A DNA stretch of 64,000 bases from Lepidodermella squamata (lineage: Eukaryota; Animalia; Gastrotricha). Numbering within the stretch: position 1 is the stretch's first letter; every line of letters begins with the position of its first letter. Positions 3,286-39,400 of the stretch are shown piece by piece. The notes beneath the pieces were generated by a model that did no database searches, was not told the DNA's origin, and was given only the letters and a program-made list of their open reading frames with translations. The DNA is taken from the NCBI GenBank assembly GCA_047495785.1, contig JBLDXI010000007.1, forward strand, positions 3,348,001 to 3,412,000. The letters run 5' to 3'. Position numbers and translations under genes: made by a program.

Positions 3286-6200
3286 CTAGAATGCCACCAA
3301 AACTGCGTAGACGTTGATTACGAGGAAAATGTCGAAGTAGATGAAGAAGGCTGCGAGGTCCAACGCCCGAGCGAAGCAGATCTTCGCAGACGCTATTGAA
3401 ACGTTGACCTTCTTGGACATCAACTGCGGAAATTTCGCAGTTACAGCAAACATTGCAGCTTCATAAAGGGCGATCATTCCAGTGAGACCAGATAGGATCA
3501 ATACGTATTCGGCCATGAGGACTGACTCGGCTGTATCAGGAATCAGCCCTAAGACATCCGACTGGATCACAATCATGCTGAGTAGAAGGGTGCCAGCGAA
3601 TGCCGGACGATCAGGAACGTCCGGCTGAAAGATGAGCGATGAGAAACCCAGCGCCATAAGGATTGAACATGGCGCAAGCGAATTGATGAGATAAGGTATC
3701 GGTTTTCGAGTGAAGGCGACATTAAATCGCGTATAGCCTGATGTTCCATTTCTTCTAAGCAGAGAAGTAGTTATGCCATAGAGGGAACTCGACGACTTCA
3801 GTTTCCACATTTCGCTGTCGAAGGTTCCAGGAATTTCAAGGCGAACCCCGCCAAATGCGACAAATTTATCAGCTTCATCGAGGGCGAATGTGAAGTCACA
3901 AGCTTGTGAATCAAAGGGGAATTTACGAAGCTTCAAGACGCATTTGGACCGAAGTATCCCATACCTTATCCAATGGAAAAACAGCGTACGATTAGGGGTG
4001 GTTGGGTAGTAGACAACATGTATCTGCTCTTTGAATCCACTCTCCATGTAAAGGTCGTTAGTCGTGTTGGTGAATCGCAGGCTCGGGACCCAAAGCTGGC
4101 GTCTGTCAACCGCATATATGCGATCTGCATCATTTACTGCTGGAGCAGTAGTGTCACTAGAGCAGACGTTCACGACCCACTGAACCACAACACTTCCTGA
4201 TACTGATACTTGCCGAGCCTCGGCGTCGATATCATGCAGCCGATCCATCTCAAATGTCAGGAAAATTTGTGTTCCAATAGCCGGTGATCTGTTTGGAAAG
4301 CAGCGTACGTCTAAATATGAACTTTGTTTCATCAAATACCTGTTTCCTGTTTCTAGATTTTTGCATGGTTTCAAATCGTCGATCTCGAGCAAAGGGATGG
4401 CATAGCCATCGATCAAATTAGGTATAAAAAACTCCGAGCTGTTTGTTATGAAATCGTAAGTCCTGGGACCTAGCGTTGTAGGTAGATTGGTGGTGGATGC
4501 AGATGGCCCCAGGCTCCACAAACGAAAATTCGAAATTGTAGCATCTCCCTGAGTGCCGTTAATTCCATAAAGCATGATGCTAGCATTGCCTTTCGCAATC
4601 TGATTTGTGCTTAGGCCACTTGCATTTGCACTTGACAAAATGATCATCGAATTGGTATTATTGTCCTCAGGTAAAGGAACAAGAGCGACCTTGAGGAAAA
4701 CGCATTCGTGATATTAGCCAATTAATATTTGAACCAATTACTTACAGAGACTAGGTCGTTAACGCTTTGAACGATAATGCGAAAATATGCCGTGCCCGAA
4801 CTGTTGAAGACGTTGGTAATGGTAATAGACTCATAGTCGTACGATAGAGGCACGGTTTGGCTGATATTCACCACATTAGCGTCGTAGGCTAGGTATAGCT
4901 TTCCACCTATACCGATTTGCAGAGCCAGGTGAAGTCCATCATAATTGTCGAAGGTATCGGGACTAGCTGTAGCACGTCTCTTACGACCCGCCGTGCTCAT
5001 GCCTTCGAAAAAGTGCTTACAATAGCTATTTTAGGGTATTCATGTTGACTTACTGACGTCTGCTGGGTGGCCAGTGATAGCAAACACAAGGTATCCATAC
5101 GTGGCCCCAGTCGGGTCGTACTTACAGCTGACATCCATTTCGGCTCGGAATGGAACGTATCCCATCTCTGAAGGCAGCTTTTTGTCCAATAATGCCGATC
5201 CGTAATCAGCTGTTGGATAGGAATTGAGTAACACTCCAGTTTTGTTACTCTTTGCATTCGCTGTGACAGTGAATTTAGCCGTTGCGTTGACAGTTGAATT
5301 CGTGTCGTAAGATAGATGACCGAGGAAGGCCGGATGGCCAGACCATAGATAGGGCAATGGCATCGACTGCAAATTCGGCTCTGGGACCATATAACCTGGC
5401 ATTGGAGTTGATGTTGTCGTAGTAGTCGTTGATGTGGTTTTGGGGGTCGTAGTAGTAGTGGATGTAGATGTCGATGGGGTTGTACTTGTTTTTGTTGTTG
5501 AAGTACTTCGAGTCGTTGTTGTAGGGGTCGTCGTAGTTGTCGTGGTTGTCCTGGTAGTTGAAGTTGACGTAGTCGGAGTTGTTGCCGTGGTAGAAGTCGA
5601 TGTTGTCGGGGTGGTCGTTGTTGTAGTCGATGATGTAGTTGTCGGCGTCGTAGTTTTAGTGGTAGTCGTTGGAGTCGTGGTTGTGGTTGTTGTTGTTGTA
5701 GTTGTCGATGGAGTTGTCGTGGGGGTGGTTGTTGTAGTTGACGTAGCAGTCGGAGTTGTAGTCGTCGTTCTAGTTGTAGTTGAAGTTGTAGTAGATGGCG
5801 TCGTGGTAGTCGAAGACGTCGAAGCGCTCGCACTCAGTCTCCAAAAATAGAAATTTCTGATTAATGTATGGCCATGTTGGTAATTGCAGAAATTGTTGAT
5901 ACGCAGTTTCACAGTCGCAGTAGTCCAGATTGTGTTCATCCCGGTGATATTTACATAATCAACGCAAACCTTTGCCTGTAGGGTGCTTAGCGGGGCCATT
6001 GCTACAGTCAAGTTATCTCCAAATGCTTGGATTATCAGGCGAAAGCGAGCAGTTCCTGAAGAATCGAACAGCCCGGTACCACAACCCGGTGCCGTCGTTG
6101 CAACTATCGGAGAACACGGAACTTGGCAAGTTGAACTGATAAGTGTGGGGCTGAACAGTATTCGCATTCTCCCATCGTTCATCAGTTCTTGCCATACGGT

Positions 6201-6827
6201 GAAACCACGGAAATTTGACATGATATCGTAGCAGCCAGTACTGTCGGCTTTCAGGAATGAAGGGTGAGCTTAAGCTTAAGGTCGGATAATAAAAGTTCAC
6301 TCACTGGGATAATTCAGCGAGGTGCTGGAAAACATTACTCCGAGCCAACCAGGCGTACTGCTGGTATATGTTCCGTCGTAATTAGCAGTGACGTCCATCT
6401 CTGCGCGCCAATCCGTGGTCGTTGTAGGGAAGTACTGTCATGATTAAAATGGATTAGAATGCAGTCAATTCCTTGAGGAAAAAACTTACGGTATTAGCGG
6501 ACATTCGTCCGTAGTCGGCCGAGTCTGTAATGTCTCCAACTTGATAAGAGTCGGATAGTTGATTCGCGGAATTGAAAAGAGTGAATGTCTGTGAACCAGC
6601 AATGCTGGAGTTCGCCTGGTCAAACGACATGTTGGCTAAATATAATGCAGATCCAGAAAATAGATACGGCAAGGGTAATGTTGCCGTATCTGGCACGGGG
6701 GTTATTAGTGAAGCTATTAGACAAAATCAGTAAACAGTATTAGACGAAAACCTTCCATAAAGCCGTTAGCCTTACCCACTCCACTGGCTTGAATGATCAC
6801 GCATATCAGAAGCGCGTATAACTTCAT
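3286..6827 (-). CDS. Gene B: Cys-loop ligand-gated ion channel subunit with two extra N-terminal domains and a Thr-rich stalk (~1069 aa)
   Basis: Seven phase-consistent exons: 6827-6776, 6713-6490, 6434-6305, 6247-5054, 5002-4746, 4689-4340, 4288-3286. Signal peptide MKLYALLICVIIQASGVA; loop A LWVPS; Cys-loop CVLKLRKFPFDSQAC; pre-M1 RKP; M2 DRPAFAGTLLLSMIVI; four hydrophobic helices. Confidence 0.92.
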
Positions 6828-11230: not shown

Positions 11231-14200
11231 CTAATACACCACCAGCGATGCATAGATGTTTAGGATCAGGAAAGCATCGATGCTAATGCAGAATATTGCA
11301 ACATCCATGGCTCGAGCATAGCTGATTCGTGCCTTGAAGAAAGCGAACCTTCCGTCATTTTCTAAAAGGTAGGTGTATCTGCAGGTAGCTGTGAACATTA
11401 TTGCAGCGTATAGGGTAATCATCGAACACAGCCCGCATAGAATCAGAATATACTCAGCCATGAGAACAGATTCCGAGGTTTCGGGAATCTTATCTAAAAC
11501 TTGGGATTGGATTACAATCATACTGAGAAGGAGCGTCCCGGAGAATGCCGGACGGTCTGGGCAGTCGGGATCAAAAAGCAGTGACCCAAACACAAGGGTC
11601 AGTATGATGGCACACGGCGCCATGTTGTTGATGAGGTACGGCGCAGGCTCACGGGAGAAGCCAACAGTGAAAATGGCATAGCCCGATGTTCCATTTTTTC
11701 GCAACGGCGATTTGGTAACGCCGTGTTTGTTAGACGCAGCATCAAATTTCCACATTTCGCTGTCGAACGAGCCGTCAAAGGCGAATCGCGAGCCGCCAAA
11801 GAACAGAAATTTATCAGCCTCGTCGAGCAGAAACGTGAAATCGCATTGCTGCGTGTCGAACGGGAATTTTCTCAGCTTCAATATGCATTTCGATGTCATC
11901 ATGCCGAGTCGTATCCAATGAAAAAACAACGTGCGATTCGGGCTCGTTGGGTAGTAAGCTATCTGGACTTGTTCCTTCCAGAACATTCCATTCTCCATGT
12001 ACAGGTCGGATGTTGTGTTGGCGAATCGGATGCTCGGAACCCATACATCACTGCGCTTGACTGTGTAAACACGATCGACTTCGTTCACATTAGGCGCCGT
12101 CACTTCTTTAGGACAATCAGTAACAGCCCATTGTACAAGCAGTTGAGTCCCAGCAGCTATCTCGCGAGCATTAGCATCGATGTCGAACAATTCTTTGAAC
12201 TCCAGAGTGATGAAAATCTGAGTCCCAACAGCCGGAGATCTAGGAAAAACAATTTACAGAAAAATCGGCATTTGAGCAAATTGCAGTACTTGACTCTGGA
12301 GTTGATGAATCTGCAACTCGTCAGGTCGCCCATTTTTACTAGCGGAACGAGATTACCGTCTATCAAGTTTGGAATATTGAAACTTGAAGTATTTGAGCTG
12401 AAGTCGTAAGTTCTTGCAGCAGCTGTGGTTGGCAGAGCTGTGGTTGATGGCGAGGATTTCAGTTCCCAGACCTTAAGGCTTCGAACTGTTACATCGGCGT
12501 TGGATCCGTTTATTCCGTACAGCTGAATCTTGGCTACACCGCTCGCGAGTTGATTCGCGCTGAATCCAGGGATACTGACATCGCTGAGGAGAATCGTGGT
12601 CGTGGCATTGTTTCCACTGCTGGGAGCGATGGCGACAGTGATTTTGTCGCCTAAACTCTGAATTACCAGTTTGAAATTAGCTAGTCCCGATCCATCAAAT
12701 ATGTTTAGCATTGGGCTGATAGAATTAACAAAATAATTCAGAGGGACAGTTTGGCTCGTGCTTGTCGGAACCGCTTCATAAGATAGGTAAGCGCTGCCGC
12801 CTTGACCGAGCTGAAGACATATATGAGCCCCGTCGAAATTGCTGAAACTACCCATGCGCCCACTGGAATCATTTGCTTAGAAAAACAAGAGGTTATAAAA
12901 TGTGGACGATAGCTCTGAATATTTAAAACCCACCTACAGATGCGGGTTGGCTGGTCATCCCCATCACGAAATAACCCGACGAATCTGGCTTGTAATCTGA
13001 AGTGAGTTCCATCTCGATTCGAAAGCCGTCGGAACTTAGACTTGTAGGCAGGTTTGCGCCGACAGTGGCCGATCCGTAATCGATTGATGGATTATCATCC
13101 AGTTTCAACCCAGCCGCGTCGAAAGCAGCGCCGCCCTGCAGAGAAACATATCCGCCCTGTTCGCTGAATGAGTTATTCGATAGATAAGCAGGGATGTCAG
13201 AGTGCATGTAAGGCAGCGCAAGTAAATTTAAATCAGGATGAAGTGATGAGCTGCTTTGCTGTTGGGTAGTTGATGCTTGTCGTGACGTTGTAGTAGGATT
13301 CAGGGTTGTCGAGATTGATGACGCAGCAATAGTTGATCCTTGAGATGACAGCGCAGCTGTCGAAGGCGTAAGAGTAGTACTCGAGCTTGCGGTGGCCGAA
13401 GTTGTTGCTAAGGGGGTTAACGTTGAAGTTGCTGATGATGTTGTTGCTGTGCTGGAGGTGGTCGAAGTTGGGGTAGTCGGTGTTGTCACACTGTTGGATG
13501 TCGTCGATGTTGTTGTTGTCGTGGTTGGAGTTGTTGACGGAATCGTAGTAGTCGATGTCGATGGGGGAAACGTAGTCGGATTAGTTGTCGGTGTTGATGG
13601 AATTGTTGTCGTTGTGCTTGAACTTGAGAAAAAACCAAAATAGATCAAGTATAGCTGTCCCGCTTTAGGGAAGACGAATGCAACGCCTTACAAATGTTAT
13701 TCTGAATTGGGATAGCTAACCCTAACAAATCGAAAAAAGCGCCCAAAACCATGTAGCAGTAAACAGGAGCCTAAAAAACCTGAATGACTAAAATAGCGGG
13801 TAAGAAAATCGAAATGATTAAATGATGAAATCCGCTAAGAAAATTGAGTTTGTGCAACTGCATTTGTGCAAATGATTTTATGCATAATCGTTTGTGCAAG
13901 TACAGGTAAATCCATCTGCTGACCACGCGTTATTATAGCCACCCGTATGACATGCACCAAATGACGCCTCATTAGTTGCATTTTCAAAAGATTATTACTT
14001 TTATAATGTATCTACTTCAGTTTTGATGATAACTGATAACAAAAAATAACTAAAAAAAGTTGCGCAAGTGAGGTTGCGCTGGTTGCGCGTGGGAGATAAC
14101 CATAGTAGATTGTAGGAGGCTCTTAGATTATGGAATCACTCAAATCCCTGTAAAACTAACTAGAACGCGTTATATGCAATATCGATTATCGAAAAAGTTT

Positions 14201-17200
14201 TCGTGCTGGACTAAGATAATCAGATTTTGCAATGATCGAAAACAGTTTACTATAAGAATTACGGTTGTATGCGAGCGAAGCGAGAAATTTGAAAAATGTG
14301 CTACACTGAAACTGATTTGGAAATAGCATTCACAGCTGCCCGGGAGCGAGACGAGGGGCGTATGCTCGCGAATTCGATAGAAAATTATGAATCTTCTGAC
14401 AAAAGCAGACTCTTCGCGGACGTGATTAACGGCGGCCCCTGTGACCACTGATCGTCAGCTACCCGTTAACCTAAGGGTCAAGCGGCTCCTCTGGTTGCGT
14501 CATTTCATGTCATCACAAGCCAACTACGAGCCAGTGGAGGAGGACAAATAAAAAAACTTCGTTAGTTACAAACTAATTTCATCGTTTCTTGTCCTACATT
14601 AGTAAAACTATATCAGCCTATCCGGGCGAAACAATATAATTTTATCGATCACTAGTCGAGAAAGAAGCCAATAGAAGCCCCAACACAAATACTGACTAAC
14701 TGTGAGACAGTTAAGCAGAAATTAGTTCAGCGACGTCACTTGAGCAGTGATAATTGAGCAGGAGACACTTTAGCAACCGCTACTTCAGCAGACGCTATTT
14801 CAGCAGACAGCACTTTAGCAGGTGAAAGTTCAGCAGAACTTAGTTCAGCATTTGCTACTTCAGCAAACAGCACTGAAGCAATCGACACTTCAGCCGAAGA
14901 CTTATGGGCAATGATATACTTGAGCAGAAGTCATTTCAGCAAACGACATTTTCTCAGTGTGAATTTGAGCAAAATGTAATCAAATATCGATGCTTAAGTG
15001 ACGTTGCTGAACTAAGTTCTGCTGATCTGTCTTACAACCGACTAACCTCGTCGATGTAGCTCTATTCAAGCATGATCCTTGAGGTGGAAAAGCTGGAGCA
15101 GTGGTCGTTCCCGATGTGAGGCCGAAAAAGAAAACCCGTCGCACTAGAGTATCTCCAAGGCCCCCTTGTGAACCCATTATACTAACTACTGAAAAGTAAG
15201 CCCCCATCACATCCGTGCTCATCGACGGGACAGGTAGGCCAACGAAACAGCTGCAAGTTTCCGTCGTAACACTAGCGGATAGTGGCGAAACAGCGACGCT
15301 AGCAAGGTCGTTTGCGACCTGAATAAAAAGCCGAAACTTGCTCGAGCCTGAACTGTTCAAGAAACGAGAGCTTCCACACGCAGGGACCGAAGTTGCATTC
15401 GGAGGATTGCCCGGAATCGGTTGTGACGTCGAATTTCTCGTCTGGTATGTAGAATACGCTAACCCGGATGGTTGCAGTTGAAAGGATATGAGAAGACCTC
15501 TCGGAATTCGAAATCGGTCAGCGCTCATCGCTCCGGGCGATGTAACTTGAAATAGGGAGGATAGGAGAATGGATCGCTGTGATTAACTAGAAAAACCTAC
15601 GATAAGTTGTGGATGATTCCGTAATGGCTACAGTGAACCAGCCCATCGATCTATTTGCCGGATACGTGATTTCGGCGTCAATTTCAATTCGAAAGTTGGC
15701 AGGTGAACAGATGTAACCCTGATGGAGAAAAAAAGGACCTAGCCACATAACCAATAGTCGAAAACTTACCAGCCCAGAGACGATGACACCTTGAACAATT
15801 TGGGGCGATATGCGCGCCAGTTGATACCCCGAGCCTGGGATTTCCTCCGCTCGTAACGGGTCGTAAGCGTTGGAGTTGAATGTCGTGGTTCCATTGACAT
15901 AATCGAAAGAGTTATCGTAATCGTAACAGACAGCACCCTGGAAGCCGTACGGAAGTGGGTAAGAGGTTTCGTCTGGGGTCGGGGTGCCAGCAAGTACTGT
16001 GAAAGAAATACAACATACTTTAGTTTGGATTCCCTGGGGAGGAGGAATGGTCTTCACATATAGTTTGGCAATACACTTTACATTGTCGAGCGCGACCGGA
16101 CACGCGAGATTATCACTAATTTTATTAAGCCAAGTGCGCACTCACTCGCGGCGTATTTGCAACACCTGTTTCAATCGCCCAATTTTTGAAAATACACTCA
16201 CAACTAGGACGCTGTTAAGTCGGTATTGATCGTGTTTTGCGACGGGGGTTCTGAAATTTATCCGCGCTATCCTAAGGTGCTAGGTGTTGCTATTGACAAT
16301 TTCAAGTTGTTTGATCTTGACGTGATATTGTCATTAACGGACCGTCATTGTCCGCTTACAATTTAGAGAGCGCGATATTGCTACACTTTTGTATGCACAA
16401 AGGCTCGATAGTGATTTACCGCTGCCGTCTCAGTTGTCAGTTGACTTAAGGAGGTGCCATTAGCTTCTATCTGTCACCTGCGCGCGTGTAACTTTGTGTC
16501 ATCTTATATCCCGCCGTGGGTCAGTTTTTTCATAACGCGCATGTAATTTATGAGTGTTCCATTGTGCGATTGCACGACGACCGGTTCTAAGCCATGGCCG
16601 CAGTCCAGCGTCAACGTTGGCAATAGTGCGCGAGAGGTGAGATTCATCAATGGATTGATGGCATTAAGAGCCTGTCCAATGTGTCATATTGGCTGACGAA
16701 GCTAAATGCTACTCTACAGCCTCTATATTCTCCTATCACTCATGACCGCATTCATCTTTGGTTCATTCGGAACCTCGATTCAAGCGGTCATTCGTGCAGG
16801 AAAAGTGTTTCTGTATTCCGTGCCGTCCGAGATTCCTTAATTCTTACTATTACCTATTTCGCAAAGAACCCATATCTTCAGCAACCATAGCATGCTGATG
16901 TTCCTGGAGAATTGTTATTCGGATATTCGGATTTTCGATTCGAAAAATATAACGACAGATATAGGCTGGTCTTAAAAGCGAGATGGCACGCAATACACGC
17001 AATTGGATTTTGGAACATATTTCGACGCCTAGTTTTTGCATTGTTGGTAAACAGACCATTAGTTACCTTGGAGCGATTCAATTAGGAACTTTTCCAGGCC
17101 ACCGCCCAATTTCCTGTTATACTTTCTGATCTCACCACAGCAATCGTTCAATCACAGTATAATTTTTGAAAATTGAATAAGTCTGTATTTGCTGTTCTCC

Positions 17201-20200
17201 AGTACAGTGCGTCAGGGCGAGGTTGATCACTAGCAGCGTCATAGTCGGAGAAGGCGCTGATGATGCCGAACCCAGCCGGCAAGAGCGAGCGGTTGCGGTC
17301 GACCGCCGAAAGCTTATCCTAAATACTGCCGAATATTTTCTAAAAATTCACCTGGCTGGCAAATGGCAAAGTAGGTAAAACCAAAGTGGCCGAATTTAGG
17401 GCGAGATGATGCTATACATAGAAACAATTAACCCCGAATTAAGAGAACACAAAAACAGCTCCAGCTGATCAGAACAAAAACGGGGCAAAGAGCAGTTGAC
17501 GCATAAAAAGTAAAATGAACTCAAAAGAGCGTCATTTTTTTTCTAAGTGAAAGTTTTTTGGTGCTGGTGACGGTGGATAAAACCACGTATTCAGTCTTCC
17601 GTGAAAATGATTACAGTGAAAGTAATTAACTTAGATCTTAGATGATTACTGGGTAGCCCAGTTAAATGCGATGGGCAAAAGGGCTATTTGTTTCTAGCGT
17701 ATCGGATCGCATTGTTCGGCGCAAACTGCTTGCAACTTGCAAAATCGAATCTGACAATATCGCTTCATTTTTTGGCAATTTCGATATCTCTCAGTGATTG
17801 TGTTGCCCGGGATAAGGTGACTCAAAAAATGTTTCCCTTTTTTACATTCTGATTCTGATTTTATTATGCATTTTGTTTCACAACAGTTAGCAATAGGTTA
17901 GTTCTCGGCGCCTCACCTAAGAGGTCGTAAAATCCACTAGTTCATCTGGTTTAGATTTAAGATATCGCAGAAACGCAGTATGAGAATTATTGACAATACT
18001 GGAGGGCAGCCGGTTCCGAGCTGCGCGCACACGCCTTGTAAAGCTGAACTGAGAGCTCGGATGTTCAAATCGTTTCATCACAACGGCATGAGCTGGTAAC
18101 GGGGATTTGAAGATATTTCGAAGAATGTCGAAAAGCTAGCATCCACACAGCCTGGGTACATTGTGTGGCATAGCGCAAGGTCGTGTTGAAAACGTCTAAT
18201 TTCAAGAGGGCACAATCCTAGTTTTTTTACATCTTTCATAATACGAGGCACCTTCAATCGATGAATAGTAGTCACATCTATACAACAGGCGTTTTGTGAA
18301 CCTGGCTTGAACAGCCTCCAGCATATCAATGTCTGTTAAGTGATACGGTGAGTAGACCGAAGGGCAAAAATCTAGCCGTGAAAGAGTGTATGTTATGTAT
18401 TTAAGCGGAGAGACTTCGATGCGAATGATTTGCATATCACGCCATTAATCCTTTGGCAACGTGTAGACAACGCATTGCAGTGCTCAGAGAACGTAAGGTG
18501 TTTATCAACGGTAATTCCGAGATCTTTAACTGAATCGACAACGTTTAGCTCAACATCTTTCACTTTGAACTGAAAGGGAAATGTGTGCTTTCCAAGACTG
18601 AGAACAACGCATTTTTTCGGATTAACCGTTAATCCGAAAAAATGCGTTGTTCGTTGCGTTGTTAGGGCGAAGTAGGACCTCGGAACTGGTAGGGACTAGA
18701 AAAATCGACATAAGGGTCCCCCCTTTGGTCTGTGAATGAGCCCACCGAACGGACCGCCGGTATTGGTAGGGATGATCCCTACCATCCCTAGCGGTACTTC
18801 GCTCTCTGGATTAACGGATTAACGTATTATCGGATAAACCATGTGAATCAAGCCAGCAGATGCTTTTATCGAGATCTGATTGAAGTTCGATGCTCGATGC
18901 AATCGGCAAGACAGCGAATAACATGATACAGCTTCGTATCGTCGGCAAAGAATTTCGTGATCGATGATTTTATCAACGTGTTGACATCAGTCGTGAAGAT
19001 CAGGAAAAGCTACGGTCCGAGCACCGAGCCTTGGGGCACTCCAGAAGTAACGGTCGACCACGAGGATGTGCTGTTATTCAGTTTAGATTGGAATTGAGCA
19101 TTTCGGTGCTAAAAAAGCTGCGGCGCATCGGCCCAAATGTCAGTTTTTCGGCGCTGAAAATTTTTCATCTAAAAAAAGGATAAGTCCAACAGAAAAAGAT
19201 GATGATTAGGGGATGTGAGCATTAGTTTTCATCTAAGCATTGGTATTAAAGTGGTAAGAATCCTCGCCTGTAACTCTAGAGATTAGGGTTCGAATCCCCG
19301 CCAATGCGTCATTTTTCTGCTCTCTATTTTTTTCCCTCATTTAAATATTCACACATTCATAATACTAAAACCCATGAATTCAGGGTGTAAAAAAAAATGC
19401 GGTTAATGCCTTTTAAGAAAAAGCATGAAAAAGGATACGCATAGGGCCCGAATTACAAGGATCGCGTGTGAGCTCGCTAATGTTAGCAAAAAGCCTGAAT
19501 TCATGCCTTTTTTTTCCTGTGATGGGACACTATAACCGTCTACTTACATCTATTGTGAAGAACCCGCAGGAGACATAAATTCCCCTGCGACCATGTCAGG
19601 AGACCAGTAGGAATAAGTTTACCCATGTCGACAGAAATTATCCAGAAATCTGGATAAAATGCCAGAACTGAGGGTGGAAATGAGTTGTCATTTCTTTGGT
19701 GGAAATGACAGAACTGAGTCCATATTATCACCATGTGAAATGAGTTGTTTACCAGAGCCACCGTTCAACAATTATTCATGGGTTTCAGAAGCATTTTTTT
19801 GGTTTACATGCTCTATAAACCACCCAGCCGTCATTCCAGACGTCATCCCGCATGAGAAAACGCGTTCGCGCTTCGTATGAAAAAAAATTGAGAACATTCG
19901 TAGGCTGCTTTTAAATAATTTGAAAAAAACTTGGCATCGATTTCAGCCTTTGAACTTTGCCATATTCAATAACAGAATCCCAAAAAAATGCTTCTGAAAC
20001 CCATGAATAATTTTTGAACGGTGGCTTTGGTAAACAACTCATTTCACATGGTGATCATATGGACTCAGTTCTGTCATTTCCACCAAAGAAAACGATAGTC
20101 CGATCAAGGATGTGGCCGTGGGGTCAAGCCGAAAACACCTATTTTTGAACCCCCAAAAAGTGACCTTCGGGAAAACCGCTATGGCGTCAAAACCATTCAT

Positions 20201-22668
20201 TTCCCAGCCGATTCCTTTGAACTGGTTGAAGTTGAAACCAATCCCCATCGATTAAAATAAAAAAATAAAAATTTCATGATGGGGGATAGTGGGTATAGCG
20301 CGTGGAAAATCACCATTTTTTACATGTAAACATGTATGCGCGAGTTTCAAAAAGATCCGCCATAATGAAAATTTACGAAAATCAGCAAAAGAATTAAAAC
20401 TTCATGTTTCCAATAGGAGTTTCATCTCTGGTAACTCTATTCTCTATGATAGAGACACCCCAGCTCGGTCGGGCAGTAGAAAATTTTATGATTTCACTAG
20501 AATTATAGAAAAATAGTTATCTTCCATCATTTTGGTTTGGAACTTCGGTAATTAGAGAAATCCCGTTATGAGGCCAATGGAGGAGGAGTTTTGAAGCAAT
20601 TTCCGGCTAATCCTGACACAAAATCTTCAAAAATACCGTCAGCTAAAGCTCGCTGCGCTCGCACCCAGGTTTGAATTCACTCAAGTTGGAATTTGGCGAT
20701 TATTCAACGGCAGCTTATTGAAGGGTCGACCATCGACCTTATATATAGTGGATATACAAACCCAGCACTGATAATAGATCTGGCGCGATCCATGACTGAT
20801 ACCATTTCAGTTGCCAAGTCTTATCGGCATTGTGATTAAAAAAAGAGATGTTACCAATAACGGTACATTTGATATTTTTCTTGGTTTGGAGGTTTTTCAG
20901 ATCATTCCTGATGGCGAATCGTCAACAATTGCGCCTGCTAAAGCTCGCTTCGCTAAAGAAAAATGTGAGCAGTTTTAAGAGGATTTGGGACCTTTTTTTA
21001 CCCAAAAATTCAAAAAATGTCTCGCTTCGCTCGACGCATCGATTAAAATTGATAATAGTGTCCACCGATGTAAAGTGAAAGGTACTAGGTGCGCGAGCGA
21101 GCGCAATTTTTTCAGCTCTATATTAGGAACACACCAGCTTGAAAATCCTACTTCGCACACTGGTCGTAGTCGGAGTAGTCGTACTGGTAGAAGGGGTGGT
21201 TGTTGTAGTAGATGTGGTTGTCGGAGTCGTTGTGGTTGTGGTTGTGGTAGTTGTTGTCGACGGAGTTGTCGTTGTTGTTGTTGGTTTCTTCGTGGTAGTC
21301 GAAGTTGAAGTACTAGTGGTCGTCGACGTCGTAGAGGCAGTCGACGGGCTTGTGTTCAATGTCCAGAAGTAGACGTTTTTAATTCGAGCAACGCCAGTAT
21401 TCATCGCACAGAGACCATTGAGACGAAGTTTCGTTGAGCCACTTGACATGCTGACGTTCAACCCCACAACAGCCACGTCTTGGAAACTGTGCGGAGCACC
21501 GCTTATCGGTAACGGAACCATCACAACCTGCGAAATGTTGGCGATGCTTATAAATTATGTCCCAGGTGGATCAGCATAAACCGCTAAGCCCGAAATGTAT
21601 GTCAGCGTTAAATAAATGTTAAGGTAGGGGGCTTAAATTTTAGGAATTATGAAACTCAGAAACCGCATTATATCTTTTCATTTTAACTACTTCATAGTAT
21701 ATTCAATATAGTATAGGATTATGCTTTTCTAGATACAGTAATAGCGCATGCTTCCCCTGACGACTGGCGACTGAGAAATTTCTGCTACTGCTTACCCCGT
21801 GAACGTAATTATCATTTGAAGTAGGGTCTACGCAGCTATTGTTGATCTATCAACTGACAGTTAGCCTTTCGTCCGCAACCTGAAGGATGAGTCTATATAT
21901 GGTTGTTCCGCTTGAAGTAAACAAGCCAGCGCTAGTACCACCACAGGCTGCAGTCGATGTGTAATCGGGATTGCATGGCATTGTGCAGACTGCAGTCATT
22001 AAGGTGGGTTCGAACTGGACATAAGTCAGCCCACTCGGTTTCAACTCCTGTATCACATTGAGTCCTCGAATTGTTTCCACGTAGTCGAAATTGCATGTAT
22101 TGGTGGCTTAACGGAATAAACTGTCAAAAAACATATGCTAATGCTAAGCTTTGTTACTAAATCTGACTGCTCCGTCTGATAACAAGACCGAAAGCCAGCC
22201 CGTGCTAGACGCGGCTGTGTTGTACGTCGCAGTTATATCCATCTCAGCCCGCCAGTTGTTAGCAGTACCAGATGCAAGGTACTTGATAATAAATATATTG
22301 AAAACATAGACACTTGAGTTCAATCTACGTGTCAATTACTTGATCTGAAGAAATGCGACCAAAGTCATCGGTCGCTAAATTTCCCAGTAGATAGCCGTTT
22401 GAATTCTGGGTAACAATGCCGCGAGTAACGAACGTGATCGATGAAGAAATCGAGGAATTCGATAGGTCATAAGAAAAGCTCGGCACGTATGTCGCAGAGC
22501 CAGAATACAGGTATGGCAGGGCTAGGGAGCTGAGATCTGGAGTGGGATCCATCACCGCATCGATCCAGCCTGATTTCAACAGTTACATGACAGTTTAAAT
22601 AAACAAGGAAATTCTCACTAACAAATCTTAGCAAGGCATATAAGAACGAGAAATAGCTTGTGAAGCAT
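11231..22668 (-). CDS. Gene C: Cys-loop ion channel subunit with three extra N-terminal domains and two long Thr/Ser-rich stalks (~1380 aa)
   Basis: Eleven exons, all phase-compatible: 22668-22623, 22569-22340, 22281-22158, 22106-21859, 21527-21161, 15996-15770, 15718-15601, 15545-15047, 13622-12934, 12875-12290, 12239-11231. Signal peptide MLHKLFLVLICLAKICWIDA; Cys-loop CILKLRKFPFDTQQC; M2 PDRPAFSGTLLLSMIVI. The join across the 5.2-kb TE-filled intron is inferred from phase only. Confidence 0.8.
14701..15036. mobile_element. MULE-type MITE with TIRs, internal ~20-bp repeats and 10-bp TSD
   Basis: TIR tgtgagacagttaagcagaaattagttcagc vs inverted gctgaactaagttctgctgatctgtcttaca; flanking direct repeat actgactaac (14691-14700) / accgactaac (15037-15046); internal cacttcagca-like repeats. 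Confidence 0.75.
16290..17260 (+). mobile_element. Possible heavily decayed LINE (endonuclease-like remnants)
   Basis: Only fragmentary motifs such as NFVSSYIPPW (resembles the APE YRPP motif); no intact frame. Confidence 0.25.
18060..19085 (-). mobile_element. CR1/L2-clade LINE reverse transcriptase fragment (frameshifted)
   Basis: Minus-strand translations WSTVTSGVPQGSVLGP, FFADDTKL, VKDLGITVDKHLTFSEH, LEAVQARFTKRL, LEIRRFQHDL. Confidence 0.9.
18626..18817. mobile_element. Small MITE inserted into the LINE fragment
   Basis: Termini ccgttaatcc / ggattaacgg; duplicated ATTAA at 18621-18625 and 18818-18822; interrupts the RT reading frame. Confidence 0.7.
19237..19308 (+). pseudogene. tRNA-Gly-derived pseudo-tRNA or SINE head
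   Basis: GCATTGG/CCAATGC acceptor stem, AGTGGTA D-loop, GGTTCGAATCCC T-arm and a downstream T-run. The anticodon stem has two mismatches and the anticodon reads GTA instead of GCC. Confidence 0.65.
19548..19626 (-). other. Orphan first-exon-like segment related to A-type exon 1
   Basis: ATG...AGA T|gtaagt, 79 nt, phase 1; sequence similar to 2255-2300 and 24560-24626. Confidence 0.45.
19690..20091. mobile_element. Foldback MITE with ~110-bp inverted arms
   Basis: 19690-19802 is a near-perfect reverse complement of 19980-20091. Confidence 0.8.
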
Positions 22669-24491
22669 TCCTGAACAATTGATTTCGAACCTGTGCCGAT
22701 TTTTGATTATCTATCTTCTGTCAGGTTCATTCACTTCTTCCAGCTTTTCAGCTATAATAAATTATCCAGGAAGATACCCAACTGTACACGAACATCTAGC
22801 AATCATCGGCGTGGGAATAGAGCGCTTGATAATATTTTATCACAGAAAAAGGTTCTTCACTTTGGTTTAGATTCTAAAGCCTAGATATTTTGAAAAATGC
22901 CTTTGAAGCATCAAAACAAATTTTGTATATTGCATATTGTGCAAAACAAAGTTTTTGAGAATTGCGTTTCCAAGGTTACCGAGGCGATAAATAAACTGTC
23001 TTGCCTCAAGGAGTAAGCTTTTTCTCTTAAATCGTTAAAGTTAGAGAAGCTGCTCTTTCACGACGCTAGACATAAACATAACAAGAAATTAAGAATTGGG
23101 CCATTCATCATTCAATGATCAATCTTTCACCTAAAATTGAACCAGATCCAAGGCAATGTTGTTCTAACGGCTGCATCATACTATTCTATTTTATAAAATC
23201 GCAGCTTTTATTGTAATTCAATCAGCTTTTCCTTTTCATATTCGCATTTCTCGCTCATGTCCCATAAAAAACGTGCATAACAGATGAAGCCGAGCATGAA
23301 AAGCGAACGATTTTACGAACGCGCGAACTGCACTTCAAAACTCTAAAACAAAGCTTTTCGACCAAGCTTTTGGATGAATTTGCGTGCTTCATATTGCCAT
23401 TATCAATAATTCAAAGCATGTGCAGGCAGATATGCAGCGAAATAGGATGTGTGGAAAGCATGTTACCGGGCCGGGAAAGAATAGCAAAAATGATGAACAG
23501 GCACGTGCCTATTGCTGCACAATTCAAGTGCAGCGCGCGAGAGATCGAATTTTCTCAGCTATAGAACTATTTACCCATTTTTCAGAAACACTTTTCATGG
23601 TCACATAAAAACCTGGATGCTTGCGAGGCTCTTATTAGTTGCTAATTGATAATGGACGCTTTCAGTTACGCAGAGCAGCACTACTCTTGCCACATCAGCT
23701 CAACGGAGATCGCGTAACCAGACGCCTGAAAATCGATGCTCCAGATCTCCGAGATCTCCAGATCTCGATTTATTCAATCGAATAAATCGAATAAATGCGA
23801 TCGGTCTGTTACAGTCTGTGGTAAAGCGTGAAACCATCGATATTCTCTTATTCCAATTTCAGCTGATGAAACGAGATCTTAGATCAGTGCATTTTGCTGT
23901 TCTCGTGACTCGGGTTGTATTTTATTGTATTGTATCGTTTATTTGCAAATTTCATCATTGAATTCAGCAAATTAAAACAGGGTTGGCAATTTAAAAACAG
24001 GCGTGTTAAAACAGGCCTGTAAAAACATGTAGTAATTCCAGGCCATTTGTTGCATGTACATGTATAAACTGTAACAAATTATTTAGCGTTGTCAGAATAG
24101 GCAATCGCCCAATTTTCTTCGCAAAACGCTGTTTACTTAAGCCTTTTAATTATTTAAACAACGATGTCTCCAGCATACGAAGGAACGCCGCATAATTCAG
24201 TTGAAATGGTGGCCCTTCCAGCAGCCAGGCGGGGCACATGGCCTGCCGTCTGCCGTCACGTTAATTCCTGTGAGGCCAGATAGGATCGGATTATACTCAG
24301 CATGTACGGACTCAGCTGTAGCAGGAATGAGCCCTAAGAACTAAGAAAAAATCTGACTGATTGAATTGAATCGATTGAGAAGTCTGATTGAAAAGTGACA
24401 AGACAAAATGCATTCGTTTTTGCCTCTTCATTCACGTAAAAACACTGCTCTTTACGTATCACTCTTCAATTTTAAACTGATATAAACTTAT

Positions 24492-25461: not shown

Positions 25462-28400
25462 TCAGAAAGCCACCAATGCTGCGTAGACGTTGATAACGAG
25501 GAAAATGTCGAAGTAGATGAAGAAGGCTGCGAGGTCCATCGCTCGAGCATAACAGACTTTCGTAGCTCCAATTGATACTTTGAACTTCTTTGACATCAGA
25601 TGCGGAAATTTAGCAGTTGCGGCGAACATTGCCGCTTCATAAAGAGCTATCATTCCAGTGAGGCCAGATAGGATCAAAATGTATTCAGCCATGAGGACTG
25701 ACTCGGCTGTATCAGGAATTAGCTGAAGAACATCAGACTGGATCACAATCATGCTGAGCAGAAGAGTGCCAGCGAATGCTGGACGATCAGGAACGTCCGG
25801 CTGAAAGATGAGGGATGAGAAACCTAGCGCCATCAGAATTGAACAGGGTGCTAGCGAGTTGATGAGATATGGTATTGGTTTTCGAGCAAAGCCCACAGTG
25901 AATCGCGTATAGCCTGATGTTCCATTTCGTCTAAGCAGGGAAGTAGTGATGCCGTAGGCCGAAATTGACGACTTCAGTTCCCACATTTCGCTGTCGAAGC
26001 TTCCAGGAATTTCAAGGCGAACCCCGCCAAATGCGACAAATTTATCAGCTTCATCAAGGGCAAACGTAAAATCACATGTTTGCGAATCAAAGGGAAATTT
26101 CCGAAGCTTCAAGACACATTTAGATCGAATTATACCAAATCTCATCCAATGGAAAAACAGCGTACGATTAGGGGTAGTTGGATAGTAGGCTATATGAATT
26201 TGTTCTTTAAAGCCGTTTTCCATGTAAATATCAGTGGTCGTGTTTGTGAATCGCATGCTTGGCACCCATAGCTGCCGTCTGTCAACCGTATACACGCGAT
26301 CGGCATCATTGACTGCAGGAGCAGTTGTGTCACTAGGACAGGCGTTCACGATCCATTGAACTACGACACTTCCAGAGATCGAGATCTGCCGAGCCTGGGC
26401 GTCGATATCATTCAACCGATCCATCTCAAGAGTCAAGAAAATTTTGGTTCCAATAGCTGGTGATCTGTTTGATATGCAAGGTACGTCTAAATTCTAAAAT
26501 GTAATCTTTGTTTCATGAAAAACCTGTTTGCAATGTCAAGATATTTGCAAGTTTTCAAATCGTCGATCTCGATTAAAGGAATGATATTGCCATCGATCAA
26601 ATTAGGTATCAAAAACTCCGAGCTGTTTGTTGCAAAATCATAAGTTCTGGGACCAAGCGTAGTCGGTAGATTGGTCGTGGACGCAGATGCTTCCAGGCCC
26701 CACAAATGGAAATTCGAAACTGTAGCATCTCCTTGAGTACCGTTAATTCCATAAAGCATGATGTTAGCATTGCCTTTCGCAATCTGATTTGAGCTCAGGC
26801 CACTTGCATTTGCATTGGACAAAATGATCATCGAATTGGTGTTGTTGTCTTCAGGTAAAGGAACAAGAGCGACCTGGAGGAAAGCTTATCTATTATTGGT
26901 CATATTTTGAACATATAATACTTACAGAGACCAGGTCGCTAACGCTTTGAACAACGATGCGGAAATATGCCGTGCCCGAACTGTTGAAAACGTTTGTAAT
27001 AGTGATGGACTCGTAGTCGTAGGATAGAGGAACAGTTTGGCTGATATTTACCACATTAGCATCGTAGGATAGGTACAACTTCCCACCAATACCGATTTGC
27101 AGAGCCAGGTGAAGGCCATCATAGTTGTCGAAGGTATCAGGACTAGCTGTAGTCCGTTTCTTACGACCTGCCGTGCTCATACCTTCGTAGAAGGCTTCGT
27201 AAAACAGATACATTAGGGTATTAGTGTTGACTTACTGACGTCTGCTGGGTGCCCAGTGATAGCAAATACAAGGTATCCATACGTAGCCCCTGTCGGGTCG
27301 TACTTACAGCTGACATCCATTTCGGCTCGGAATGGAACAAAGCCCATCTCTGACGGCAGCTTTTTGTCCAATAATGCCGATCCGTAATCAGCTGTCGGGT
27401 AAGAATTGAGAATCACCCCAGTTTTGTTACTCGTTGCGCTCGCCTTCACTATGAATTTAGCTGTTGCGTTGATAGTTGAATTTGTGTCGTAGGACAGATG
27501 GCCGAGGAAGGTCGGATGGCCAGACCATAAGTAAGGCAATGGCATCGACTGCAAATCCGGCTCTGGGACCATGTACCCAGGCATAGGAGTTGACGTGGTT
27601 GTGACGGTAGTAGTAGTAGTGGATGTTGATGTCGATGGGGTTGTAGTTGTTTTTGTTGTTGAAGTACTTCGAGTCGTTGTTGTAGGTGTCGTCGTTGTTG
27701 TCGAGGTCGTCCTGGTTGATGAAGTTGACGTAGTCGGGGTTGTGGTCGTGGTGGAAGTCGACGTTGTTGGGGTGGTAGTTGTTGTAGTCGATGATGTAGT
27801 TGTAGGTGTCGTAGTCTTGGTTGTAGTCGTTGGAGTCGTGGTCGTGGTTGATGTTGTCGTCGGAGTTGTCGTACTGGTTGATGGGGTGGTTGTTGTAGTA
27901 GACGTGGTTGATGGAGTTGTTGTCGTTGTAGTTGTAGTTGTAGTTGTGGCAGTAGTAGACGTTGTCGTGGGAGTGGTAGTTGTAGTTGAAGTTGTAGTCG
28001 ATGGCGTTGTGGTAGTCGAAGACGTCGAAGCGCTCGCGGTCAGTCTCCAAAAGTAAAAATTTCTGATATATGTCTCGCCATGTTGATAATTGCAGAAGTT
28101 GTTGATTCGTAGTTTCACATTGCCAGTAGTCCATATTGTGTTCATCCCCGTTACATTTACATAATCAACACAAACCTTTGCCTGCAGGGTACTCAACGGC
28201 GCCATTGCCACAGTCAGGTTCTGTCCAAATGCTTGCATTATCAGGCGAAATCGAGCAGTTCCTGAGGAATCGAACAGCCCAGTGCCACAACCCTGTGCCG
28301 TTACTGCAACTATGGGAGAACATGGCACTTGACAAGTTGAGCTGATAGCTGAGGGGCTGAACAAAATTCGCATCTTCCCACCGTTCATCAGTTCTTGCCA

Positions 28401-29028
28401 TACGGTGAAACCTCGGAAATTTGCCATGATATCGTAGCAGCCACTATAGTCGGCTATAGATAATAACGAATTTAAGATGAACCCGTGGTGGAAAAATCAA
28501 GGTAAAGTCACTCGGGTAATTCAGCGAAAGGCTTGAGAACATAACACCAAGCCAACCAGGCGTGCTGCTGGAATATGTTCCGTCGTAAAAAGCGGTAACG
28601 TCCATTTCAGCGCGCCAATCCGTAGTCGTCGTAGGGAAGTACTTACGTGAAAAATAAGCAATCTCATGCAGTCAATCCATTGAAGAAAAAACTTACCGTA
28701 TCTGCAGAAATTCGCCCGTAGTCAGTCGAGTCTGTAATGTCTCCAACTTGATAAGAATCGGACAATTGATACGCAGAATCGTAAAGAGTGAACGTCTGTG
28801 AACCAGCAATGCTCGCGTTCGTCTGGTCAAATGACATGTTGGCCAAATACAACGCAGATCCAGAAAAAAGATACGGCATAGGAAATGTTGTAGTATCTGG
28901 TACGGGGGTTATTAGTGAAGCTATAAAGCATAATCAGTAAACAGACGAAAACTTTCTAGAAACACATGAGCCTTACCCACTCCACTAGCATGAATGATCA
29001 TGCCCATCAGAAGAACTTGTAAATTCAT
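25462..29028 (-). CDS. Gene D: two-extra-domain Cys-loop receptor, close paralogue of B
   Basis: Same 7-exon layout as B; signal peptide MNLQVLLMGMIIHASGVA; ORF pieces 28664-28879, 27213-28427, 26893-27213, 26487-26831, 25462-26436; Cys-loop CVLKLRKFPFDSQTC. Confidence 0.92.
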
Positions 29029-36408: not shown

Positions 36409-39400
36409 TTAGAACGCTACTATAACTGCGTAGACGTTGATAACGAGGAAAATGTCGAAGTAGATGAAGAAGGCTGCGAGGTCCATCGCTCGAGCATAGC
36501 AGACCTTCACAGCTGCAATTGATACTTCGACCTTTTTTGACATTAAAAGCGGAAATTTCGCAGTTGCTGCAAACATTGCGGCTTCATAGAGGGCGATCAT
36601 TCCAGTGAGGCCAGATAGGATCAAGATGTATTCGGCCATAAGAACGGACTCCGCTGTATCAGGAATCAGCCCTAGGACATCTGACTGGATCACAATCATG
36701 CCTAGCAGAAGGGTGCCAGCGAATGTTGGACGATCTGGAACATCAGGCTGAAATATGAGCGAAGAGAATCCCAGCGCCATTAGGATTGAACAGGGTGCAA
36801 GAGAATTGATGAGATACGGTATTGGTTTTCGAGCAAAGGCGACATTAAATCGGGTATAACCCGATGTACCATTTCGTCTTAGCAGAGAAGACGTGATGCC
36901 ATAGAGGGAACTCGACGACTTTAGTTCCCACATTTCGCTGTCGAAGCTTCCAGGAATTTCAAGGCGAACCCCGCCAAATGCGACAAATTTATCAGCTTCA
37001 TCAAGGGCAAACGTAAAATCACATGTTTGTGAATCAAAGGGAAATTTCCGAAGCTTCAAGACACATTTTGACCGAAGCATCCCAAATCTCATCCAATGGA
37101 AAAACAGCGTGCGATTAGGGGTCGTTGGGTAGTAGACAACATGTATCTGCTCTTTGAATCCACTCTCCATGTAGGTGTCAGAAGTCGTATTGGTGAATCG
37201 CAAGCTCGGGACCCATAGCTGGCGTCTGTCAACTGCATATATACGATCTGCGTCATTGACTGCTGGAGCGGTAGTGTCACTTGGGCAGTCGTTAACGACC
37301 CACTGAACCACAACACTTCCCGAGATCGAGATTTGCCTAACCTGGGGATCGATATCATTCAGCTGATCCATCTCAAGAGTCAGGAAAATCTTTGTTCCAA
37401 AAGCTGGTGATCTGTTTGAAAACAGCTGTTTGAAATGACGTCTAAATATGACATATTAAGTCGTCTGATAAACCTGTTTGCTGTTTCTAAATTTTTGCAT
37501 GGTTTCAAATCGTCGATCTCGAGCAAAGGGATGATATTGCCGTTGATCAAATTTGGTATCAAAAACTCCGAGCTGTTTGTTATGAAATCATAAGTCCGAG
37601 GCCCTAGGGTTGTTGGTAGATTGGTGGTGGATGCAGATGGCCCCAGGCTCCACAGACGAAAATTCGAAACAGTAGCATCTCCTTGAGTGCCGTTAATTCC
37701 ATAAAGCATGATATTAGCATTGCCTTTTTCAATTTGATTTGTGCTTAGGCCACTTGCATTCGCATTGGACAAAATGATCATCGGATTTGTGTTGCTGTCT
37801 TCGGGTAGAGAAACAAGGGACACCTTGAGGAAAACACAGTCAGTTAAATTAGGAAAATTTTATACGAGTTCTTACAGAGACCAGATCGTTAACGCTTTGA
37901 ACGATAATTCGGAAATAGGCCGTGCCCGAACTGTTGAAAACGTTAGTAATTGTGACAGACTCATAGTCGTACGATAGCGGGACCGTTTGGCTGATATTTA
38001 CCACATTGGCATCGTAGGATAGGTACAGCTTCCCACCAATACCGATTTGCAGAGCCAGGTGAAGTCCATCATAGTTGTCGAATCTATCGGGACTAGCTGT
38101 GGCCCGTTTCTTTCGACCCGCTGTGCTGATACCTTTGAAAAAGTTATTTTGAAGGTATCAATAGGTATCAATTTTGCATCCACGTTGACTTACTGACGTC
38201 TGCTGGACGGCCAGTGATAGCAAACACAAGGTATCCATACGTAGCCCCTGTCGGGTCGTATCTGCAGCTGACATCCATTTCGGCTCGGAATGGAACGTAT
38301 CCCATACCTGACGGCAGCTTTTTGTCCAATAGTGCTGATCCGTAATCAGCTGTTGGATAGGAATTGAGTATCACCCCAGTTTTGTTACTACTTGCGCTAG
38401 CCGTGACTATGAATTTAGCCGTTGCGTTGATAGTTGAATTTGTGTCGTAGGACAGATGGCCGAGGAAGGTCGGATGGCCAGACCAAAGATAGGGCAATGG
38501 CGTCGACTTGACATCCGGCTCTGGCACCAAGTACCCTGGCATGGGAGTTGATGTGGTAGTTGTTGTAGTAGTAGTGGATGTAGAAGTCGATGGGGTTGAA
38601 GCAGTTTTTGTTGTTGATGTTGACGTAGTCGGGGTTGTGGTTGTTGTTGAGGTCGAGGTTGTTGGGGTAGTAGTCGTAGTCGATGATGTAGTGGTCGGTG
38701 TCATAGTCTTCGTGGTAGTCGTCGGAGTCGTGGTTGTGGTCGACGTAGTCGTCGGGGTAGTGGTACTGGTTAAGACCGTGGTTGTTGTCGTAGACGTGGT
38801 TGTTGGGGTAGTTGTAGTTGTAGTTGGCGTTGTCGAGGGAGTGGTAGTTGTAGGGGTTGTTGTCGTCGTTCCAGTTGTTGTTGGAGTTGTCGATGGTGTC
38901 GTTGTAATCGAAGAAGTTGAAGCACTAGGACTCAGTTTCCAAAAGTAGAAATTTCTGTTGTATGTGTGGCCATGTTGATAATTGCAGAAGTTGTTGATAC
39001 GCAGTTTCACAGTCCCAGAAGTCCAGATTGCATTCATCCCCGTTACATTTACGTAGTCAACACAAACTTTGGCCTGCAGGGTACTCAACGGCGCCATTGC
39101 CACAGTCAAGCTCTCTCCAAATACCTGTATTATCAGGCGAAATCGAGCAGTTCCTGAGGAATCGAACAGCCCGGTGCCACAACCCGGGGTCGACGTTGCC
39201 ACTATTGGAGAGCATGGTGCTTCACATGCTGAGCTGATAGCTGTGGGGCTGTAAAGTATTCGCATCCTTCCACCGTTCATAAGTTCTTGCCATACGGTGA
39301 AACCACGGTGATTTGACATGACATCTAAGCAACCAGCTGTGTCGGCTTCATAGGGGATAATGACGAATTCAAATTAAACTGAGTGAGGGGGATTCAAGGC

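Follow-up and report, generated by a model that had tools for sequence, protein, structure and literature searches.

Tandem Cys-loop channel genes with predicted L-type-lectin-like head domains in the gastrotrich Lepidodermella squamata

The gene array and the structure of gene B

The window analysed here is a stretch of 64,000 nucleotides (nt) from the gastrotrich Lepidodermella squamata (assembly GCA_047495785.1, contig JBLDXI010000007.1, positions 3,348,001 to 3,412,000), which has the style of a spliced animal genome, with short interrupted open reading frames (ORFs) and introns of 50–63 nt. Its subject is a repeated protein domain, one copy of which, at 5830–6713, had been pointed out in a preliminary description made from the sequence alone. 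Searches with tblastn, using exon pieces of that copy and the channel ORF downstream of it, revealed spliced paralogous genes arranged in tandem on the minus strand and named A to F: gene A (partial, at or below 2218), gene B (3286–6827), gene C (11231–22546), gene D (25462–29028), gene E (36409–39926), and gene F (47596 to about 50300). The encoded layout is a signal peptide, one to three copies of the repeated domain (referred to below as heads), Thr-rich stalks, and a nicotinic-type Cys-loop channel. All eleven copies proposed in the preliminary description, one of them partial, were recovered by tblastn with three exon pieces of the copy at 5820–6702 (E 1e-5 to 1e-74): a single partial copy in gene A, two copies in B, three in C, two each in D and E, and one in F. 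The repeat is real, but its length is 245–262 amino acids (aa) rather than the approximately 200 aa first given to it.

The copy that was flagged first belongs to gene B, whose spliced model consists of seven exons (6827–6776, 6713–6490, 6434–6305, 6247–5054, 5002–4746, 4689–4340, and 4288–3286) and encodes a product of 1069 aa with one stop, which is terminal. The signal-peptide exon (6776–6827) starts MKLYALLICVIIQASGV and ends at a GTAAGG donor, from which a 62-nt intron leads to 6713; this position, originally taken as the end of the domain, is the splice acceptor of exon 2 in our model. Homologous first exons were found at 29028 in gene D and 39926 in gene E. The distal head D1 (5826–6713), about 255 aa long with six cysteines, is encoded by exons 2 and 3 and the first part of exon 4 (6713–6490, 6434–6305, and 6247–5826), and is interrupted by two introns (6489–6435 and 6304–6248). 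It is followed by a mucin-like stalk of approximately 146 aa, rich in Thr, Ser, and Pro (5394–5825), and then by the proximal head D2 (4501–5393; exon parts 5393–5054, 5002–4746, and 4689–4501; introns 5053–5003 and 4745–4690), which is cysteine-poor, with one Cys and no Cys-rich loop. A short linker and the Cys-loop channel, with its extracellular domain, Cys-loop, and segments M1–M4, occupy 3286–4500 and contain one 51-nt intron (4339–4289).

The fusion of heads and channel needs little inference about splicing, since two exons bridge the relevant boundaries. In exon 4, one continuous ORF (5040–6221) runs from the end of D1 through the stalk into D2, of which it includes the first half. Exon 6 (4689–4340) encodes the closing strands of D2, some 15 linker residues, and the first part of the channel extracellular domain. 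The Cys-loop and M1–M4 follow in the last exon (4288–3286). Additionally, the two D2 introns, 5053–5003 and 4745–4690, are skipped as gaps of 51 nt and 56 nt in contigs from run X2, with CT..AC ends that correspond to GT..AG on the minus strand. These contigs were read as RNA-like; in DNA contigs, the absence of precisely these GT..AG intervals would be unexpected. The full models of genes B, D, and E are intact, with coding sequences of 1035–1069 aa and the same exon structure.

Two peculiarities of these models may be recorded here. The gene B intron at 4289–4339 (51 nt) is in frame and stop-free, so that the unspliced ORF runs on to the stop at 3286; in genes C, D, E, and F the homologous introns disrupt the reading frame. 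In genes B (4974–4985), D (about 27150), and E (about 38100) only, an inter-strand loop of the proximal head has an insertion of about seven residues with a dibasic RKRR/RKKR furin-type motif; in the alignment of copies, genes C and F and every distal copy lack this motif.

The repeated head domain

Once the copies are spliced, the motifs initially listed for the repeat are all present (TPxPD..LPY, SFD..NS, DYG, WRAEMD, GWLxVxFS, QEL, SSGT..FRLIIQ, TVA..P, KLR, and NFxFWxL). Profile–profile comparisons with hhalign reveal homology across some 245 columns between three subtypes: distal, proximal, and the middle copy of gene C. The distal and proximal subtypes match with 99.8% probability (E 1e-28, 246 columns), and the middle copy of gene C, a separate copy correctly recognised as a third subtype, matches the distal subtype with 99.3% and the proximal one with 98.3% probability. 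The proposed distal-specific Cys-rich insert was right in one respect: cysteines in this loop occur only in distal copies, each of which has six cysteines in total. There is, however, no insertion, as the alignment shows a proximal loop of nearly the same length without cysteines.

The positions of introns agree with this relationship. The intron after the GWLxVxFS strand region is a phase 1 intron in both D1 and D2, at positions that agree to within one codon. The intron after ..LTV/..LVS has the same phase and the same place in the alignment in the distal copy of gene C as in the proximal copies of genes B, D, and E. Positions common to different subtypes are expected for a duplicated split domain.

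The ratio of nonsynonymous to synonymous substitution rates (dN/dS) was estimated pairwise by the Nei–Gojobori method for genes B, D, and E, between which the synonymous rate (dS) is 0.4–0.6. It is 0.13–0.25 for D1 and 0.09–0.12 for D2, compared with 0.10–0.15 for the channel extracellular domain and 0.07–0.10 for the transmembrane part. The heads are therefore under purifying selection and as constrained as the channel to which they are joined.

The channel part

The C-terminal part matches the Pfam family Neur_chan_LBD (PF02931; E 2e-9) and, from the extracellular domain to M3, nicotinic acetylcholine receptor subunits in the PDB (E 5e-9). A C-x13-C element, i.e., a 13-residue Cys-loop, is present around FPFDSQAC, and four hydrophobic segments corresponding to M1–M4 are found in ORF 3286–4647, with a very short M3–M4 loop. 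By these sequence features it is a genuine nicotinic-type Cys-loop subunit. The Asp at the M2 -1' position in our own alignment to alpha7 hints at cation selectivity.

Sequence searches and metagenomic relatives

The domain had been called unannotated, and Pfam indeed has no match for any copy. Scans of all copies, the exon pieces, and the metagenomic homologues described below gave no family even at E<=10, apart from noise (PGG, CCSAP, and YkcB_C); at this threshold the L-type lectin profiles PF00139, PF03388, and PF18483 matched no copy, piece, or homologue, and the pentraxin family PF00354 was likewise without a Pfam match. Among the insignificant hits of PDB sequence searches, a zebrafish CRP (E 0.14 over 50 residues), a DUF3237 protein (E 0.6), an RND protein, and an oxidoreductase were discounted.

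Among 1.84 billion representative proteins, a profile built from the largest exon of nine copies found three matches, of which one, P0002 (263 aa), is genuine (E 4.6e-7 with HMMER in the library of 1.84e9 proteins); the other two, P0001 and P0003, were rejected as tandem-repeat junk. The distal copies match the P0002 family with 97.4% probability in hhalign. P0002 originates from ENA metagenome contigs, where it corresponds to exon 1 of a gene built on the same head-plus-channel plan: this exon encodes a signal peptide with one head, the next exon another head, a short Thr-rich linker, and the channel start, and the Cys-loop and transmembrane part follow. A word search added two further paralogues at 62% identity and a second locus. 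At both metagenome loci, L001 and L004, one or more heads precede a Cys-loop channel. The second head of these loci can hardly be aligned with the window copies (hhalign E 0.0017–0.13; probability 0.5–15% for that of L001). As a side observation, this head, a much shorter Thr-rich linker, and the channel start share one exon in L001 (1178–2428) and L004 (3982–5241).

Two scans of JGI metagenome contigs revealed no relative. A word search with the channel ORF gave no match either and says little, as full-length relatives are beyond the length range of that search. Given so few relatives among 1.84 billion proteins and the JGI contigs, the family is either very rare in public data or derived from a poorly sampled lineage.

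Predicted fold of the head

P0002 was chosen for folding, as its whole distal-type domain lies in one exon, and the alignment of all window pieces was supplied. The AlphaFold2 model has a predicted template modelling score (pTM) of 0.72 and a mean predicted local distance difference test score (pLDDT) of 66.5; residues 60–237 are at 75–87, the first ~57 residues are poor, and ten strands extend over residues 62–234. Searched against the PDB with Foldseek, the model retrieved the legume-lectin-like domain of Entamoeba (E 1.8e-7), Emp46p, Emp47p, VIP36, ERGIC-53, legume lectins, and other concanavalin A-like (ConA-like) proteins at E 1.8e-7 to 2e-5; the L-type lectins head this list, at E 1.8e-7 to 1e-5. 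In all, 391 PDB chains reached E<=0.001, and the best 50 all appear, in our own classification, to belong to the ConA-like superfamily.

VIA-align, which is independent of Foldseek, placed 167 representatives at Z>=8 for the same model. The highest values, over 186–202 residues, belong to ERGIC-53 (16.6 and 16.2), VIP36 (16.5), the Entamoeba domain (15.8), peanut lectin (15.7), and Emp47p (14.5). An archaeal legume-lectin domain reaches Z 13.2, and ConA-like domains other than the L-type lectins score 12.8 or less; no pentraxin ranks in the top 50 by Z. In the ESM Atlas, whose own model of P0002 has a pTM of 0.70, the nearest structure clusters are Lectin_leg-like and Lectin_legB (TM 0.65–0.74, with 0.70–0.74 for Lectin_leg-like), and by features all 10 of the 10 best named clusters are legume-lectin families (score 0.94, 171–174 shared features). 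The window's own c-exon fragment is placed in this resource with DUF6645 and polysaccharide-lyase-like clusters at low shared-feature counts, which fits a jelly-roll and is not diagnostic.

The preliminary description had suggested a ConA-like beta-sandwich, and on this point the AlphaFold2 model, the structural matches, and the ESM Atlas agree; the predicted structure neither departs from this sandwich nor coincides with a known non-lectin domain. The more specific likeness to L-type lectins and DUF1080 held in part, as the L-type lectins proved closest and DUF1080, together with the pentraxins, more distant. L-type-lectin-like is thus the closest description of the modelled fold that the comparisons support. 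Since the window copies are homologous to P0002 by both HMMER and hhalign, we infer that they would share its fold.

The second head of L001 was also modelled with AlphaFold2 and is predicted to be ConA-like, with L-type lectins at the top by a margin of less than 1 Z unit. It was dropped as a proxy for the proximal subtype on account of its low hhalign probability to the window copies, and it serves here as background support only.

Remaining genes of the array and their neighbourhood

Gene A contributes a partial distal-type domain (1472–2179, by tblastn), and no continuation of this domain was found between the copy and the window start. Gene C is the longest: its distal domain (C_D1, 21348–22546, with a 331-nt intron at 21858–21528) and a Thr-rich stalk reaching to about 21126 are followed by the middle domain of the third subtype (15109–15985), the proximal domain (C_D3, 12451–13243, with a single intron at 12933–12876), and the Cys-loop channel part (11231–12408). 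A gap of ~5 kb (16141–21126) parts the distal domain and stalk from the middle domain. It harbours a tRNA-like gene on the plus strand (19237–19308), the sole Rfam match, and a candidate signal-peptide exon at 16893; what we call gene C may be two genes.

Genes D and E repeat the plan of gene B, with a distal domain (28032–28909 and 38927–39802, respectively), a proximal domain (26685–27575 and 37635–38533), and a linker plus Cys-loop channel (25462–26684, with an intron at 26523–26465, and 36409–37634, with an intron at 37473–37412), and in both the coding sequence is intact. Gene F has a single head of the distal type (49229–50162), followed by a Thr-rich stalk and Cys-loop channel (47596–49228, intron 48662–48605). 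A lone fragment between genes C and D (24263–24337) resembles the channel M3 region (77% identity, 26 aa) and is probably a pseudogene remnant.

The array lies among genes of animal type. Between genes E and F, a single plus-strand ORF of 813 aa (44034–46475) carries an ANF_receptor domain (Pfam E 1e-17), has a hydrophobic C-terminal half, and looks like an intronless gene for a class C G-protein-coupled receptor-like protein. Minus-strand regions at 41441–42497, 55180–56313, and 52784–54778 carry pieces of an M13 peptidase N-terminal domain, an ORF of the NEMP (nuclear envelope membrane protein) family (E 2e-23), and two long ORFs with only a weak DUF7869 match, for which a mobile-element origin is possible.

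The sugar site

Carbohydrate binding had originally been suggested on the basis of the fold. This part of the preliminary description found no support: a fold alone does not demonstrate a function, and Asp121, Asn156, and the two Ca2+ loops required in ERGIC-53 are not recognisable here. In ERGIC-53, mannose is contacted by Asp121, Asn156, Phe154, and the Gly251–Leu253 backbone, the site is supported by two Ca2+-ordered loops (155–161 and 176–185), and mutants of Asp121 or Asn156 lose mannose binding (PMC3912170). We mapped these positions on the window copies by strand order and offset only, so that all correspondences are approximate. The residue before the GWLGVMF-type strand, at the Asp121-like position, is never Asp in the window copies; it is Thr, Pro, or Tyr. 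Some distal copies, and no others, have an Asn at the Asn156-like position, in the turn that follows the VWQEL strand.

The position of the seven-residue Ca2+ loop 1 of ERGIC-53 is taken by a three-residue turn in the P0002 model, all copies are equally short there, and the corresponding strand of the proximal copies has no acidic residue. The distal Cys-rich loop would sit where Ca2+ loop 2 is expected and may be its disulfide-stabilised replacement. Judged by the alignment and the model, the classical L-type sugar and Ca2+ site seems not to be kept.

Interpretation and alternatives

We regard it as probable that the repeat is a very divergent, uncatalogued ConA-like family, closest in structure to the L-type lectins (ERGIC-53, VIP36, Emp46/47, and legume lectins), which serves as the extracellular head of nicotinic-type Cys-loop subunits. 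Several points weigh against this reading. Neither the Pfam scans nor PDB sequence searches with four queries, which gave no significant match and no lectin, connect the domain with a lectin family. The model represents a metagenomic homologue and not the window's own spliced domain, its alignment is shallow (38 rows, mostly fragments), its mean pLDDT is only 66, and its first ~57 residues are not confidently modelled. The model of the second L001 head does not clearly separate L-type lectins from other ConA-like folds, and the homology of that head to the window copies is weak. On the side of gene structure, run X2 is only presumed to be RNA, and each splice joint is represented by one low-depth contig.

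It could be argued that the repeat is decaying duplicated sequence or an artefact of gene models and not a functional domain at all. The partial state of gene A, the channel fragment at 24263–24337, and the unsettled membership of the distal domain in gene C would fit such a view, but it is contradicted already by the intact coding sequences of 1035–1069 aa with identical exon structure in genes B, D, and E, the head dN/dS of 0.09–0.25, the spliced RNA-like contigs, and the same layout kept in contigs of another organism, and we consider it highly improbable. A true carbohydrate-binding lectin, which would make the proteins glycan-gated or glycan-tethered ionotropic receptors, is suggested by the best structural matches, which are sugar-binding L-type lectins, by the ESM Atlas features, all of legume-lectin families, and by a conserved G-x-N-G-x-x-G loop before the last strand, roughly where the backbone of Gly251/Gly252 holds mannose in ERGIC-53 (PMC3912170); lobster Cys-loop receptors that bear C-type lectin and pentraxin domains offer a precedent (PMC8221624). 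The replaced Asp121-like residue, the patchy Asn, the short turn in place of Ca2+ loop 1, and the proximal strand devoid of acidic residues, all described above, speak against a lectin, and we hold this explanation only tentatively.

Alternatively, the ConA-like fold may serve as a module for binding proteins or matrix, or as a structural spacer (compare LamG, pentraxin, and the thrombospondin C-terminal domain), that anchors or clusters the channel instead of detecting sugars. The unrecognisable sugar and Ca2+ site is consistent with this, as are the matches to the thrombospondin C-terminal domain and other non-lectin ConA-like domains at Z 10–12, the long mucin stalk suited to a tether, and the conserved R-x-E pair (WRAEMD), which lies on a central strand and not in the sugar-binding loops of lectins. 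For the distal-type model, however, L-type lectins stand 3–4 Z units above non-lectin ConA-like folds. Moreover, Emp46p binds glycans without a Ca2+ site, so loss of the site does not preclude sugar binding by the heads. We give the anchoring or spacer function a little less than an even chance; carbohydrate binding, itself somewhat doubtful, stands roughly level with a role in binding a non-sugar ligand or in anchoring.

Returning to the view of the repeat as an L-type-like head on a channel, the observed repeat, gene structure, channel fusion, and purifying selection, together with the predicted fold, allow a proposal for ligand binding and gating. The subunit carries, from the signal peptide onwards, a disulfide-bearing distal head, a mucin-like stalk of ~146 residues, a cysteine-poor proximal head, a link of ~15 residues, and the channel extracellular domain. 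In a pentamer, five proximal heads could sit on top of the channel and adjust its gating, in the way known for the accessory N-terminal domains of bacterial relatives such as DeCLIC; with only about 15 residues between it and the channel extracellular domain, the proximal head could modulate gating. Tens of nanometres further out, the five distal heads could capture or tether an extracellular ligand, a task to which a head on a long mucin-type stalk is suited. The ligand might be a glycan, bound otherwise than through the classical Ca2+-dependent L-type site. A bolder and rather unlikely possibility is a new class of ionotropic receptor, in which the L-type-lectin-fold head, instead of the classical neurotransmitter pocket, would be the primary sensor, and a glycan or surface ligand, or a pull on the tethered distal head, would open the nicotinic-type pore. 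If so, these genes would encode ionotropic pattern-recognition, contact, or chemosensory receptors.

The domain family has no Pfam entry and barely occurs among 1.84 billion database proteins. The channel genes that carry it are intact, tandemly expanded, and under selection, and their heads have a supported fold; they offer a concrete handle for experiments on whether recognition at the cell surface is linked to fast electrical signalling.

Comparison with known systems

The L-type lectins (ERGIC-53, VIP36, and Emp46p/Emp47p of PF03388, and the legume lectins of PF00139) share with the window domain the predicted beta-sandwich of ~190–200 residues (Z 14.5–16.6, root-mean-square deviation 3.4–3.7), the strand order, and, in our own reading, a similar closing motif, in which a strand is followed by a Gly-rich loop and a final hydrophobic strand with an aromatic residue. 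The structural alignments, however, contain only 10–14% identical residues, with no detectable sequence similarity, and the window domain has no recognisable Asp121-type residue or Ca2+ loops. The setting differs as well: the window domain is carried by a cell-surface ion channel and not by a secretory-pathway cargo receptor. DUF1080 (3-keto-disaccharide hydrolase, PF06439), LamG, and the galectins belong to the same ConA-like superfamily, but score lower than the L-type lectins, with fewer aligned residues and no sequence match; a DUF1080-like cluster among the ESM Atlas structure matches has a TM of 0.65, and galectins reach Z of about 10–11.

Accessory N-terminal domains are treated as a bacterial feature in structural papers on pentameric channels. 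They are known in prokaryotic channels such as DeCLIC, in which the N-terminal domain modulates gating (PMC9897478, PMC12664993). In DeCLIC, too, an accessory domain precedes the canonical extracellular domain of a pentameric ligand-gated channel. It is, however, bacterial, its N-terminal domain has a different fold, and it lacks the mucin stalk and the Cys-loop; no homology is claimed.

The one animal precedent that we found is a survey of the lobster genome, which concerns other domain types and gives no functional data. It counted 66 Cys-loop receptors of an unusual kind, which carry C-type lectin, pentraxin, or LDLa domains, and presented them as the first such case (Polinski et al. 2021, PMC8221624), and these chimeras seem to be restricted to lobster and related crustaceans, none having been found outside crustaceans (PMC8221624). 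They are likewise animal Cys-loop subunits with extra N-terminal domains of the recognition type, in an expanded family, and pentraxin is also ConA-like. The window head, in contrast, matches neither PF00354 nor C-type lectin models, pentraxins are missing from the top 50 structural matches of its homologue, and the heads are tandem, L-type-like, and borne on mucin stalks. Fusions of Cys-loop channels with recognition domains are already known; new here are heads from a different, uncatalogued, L-type-like family, arranged in tandem on mucin stalks.

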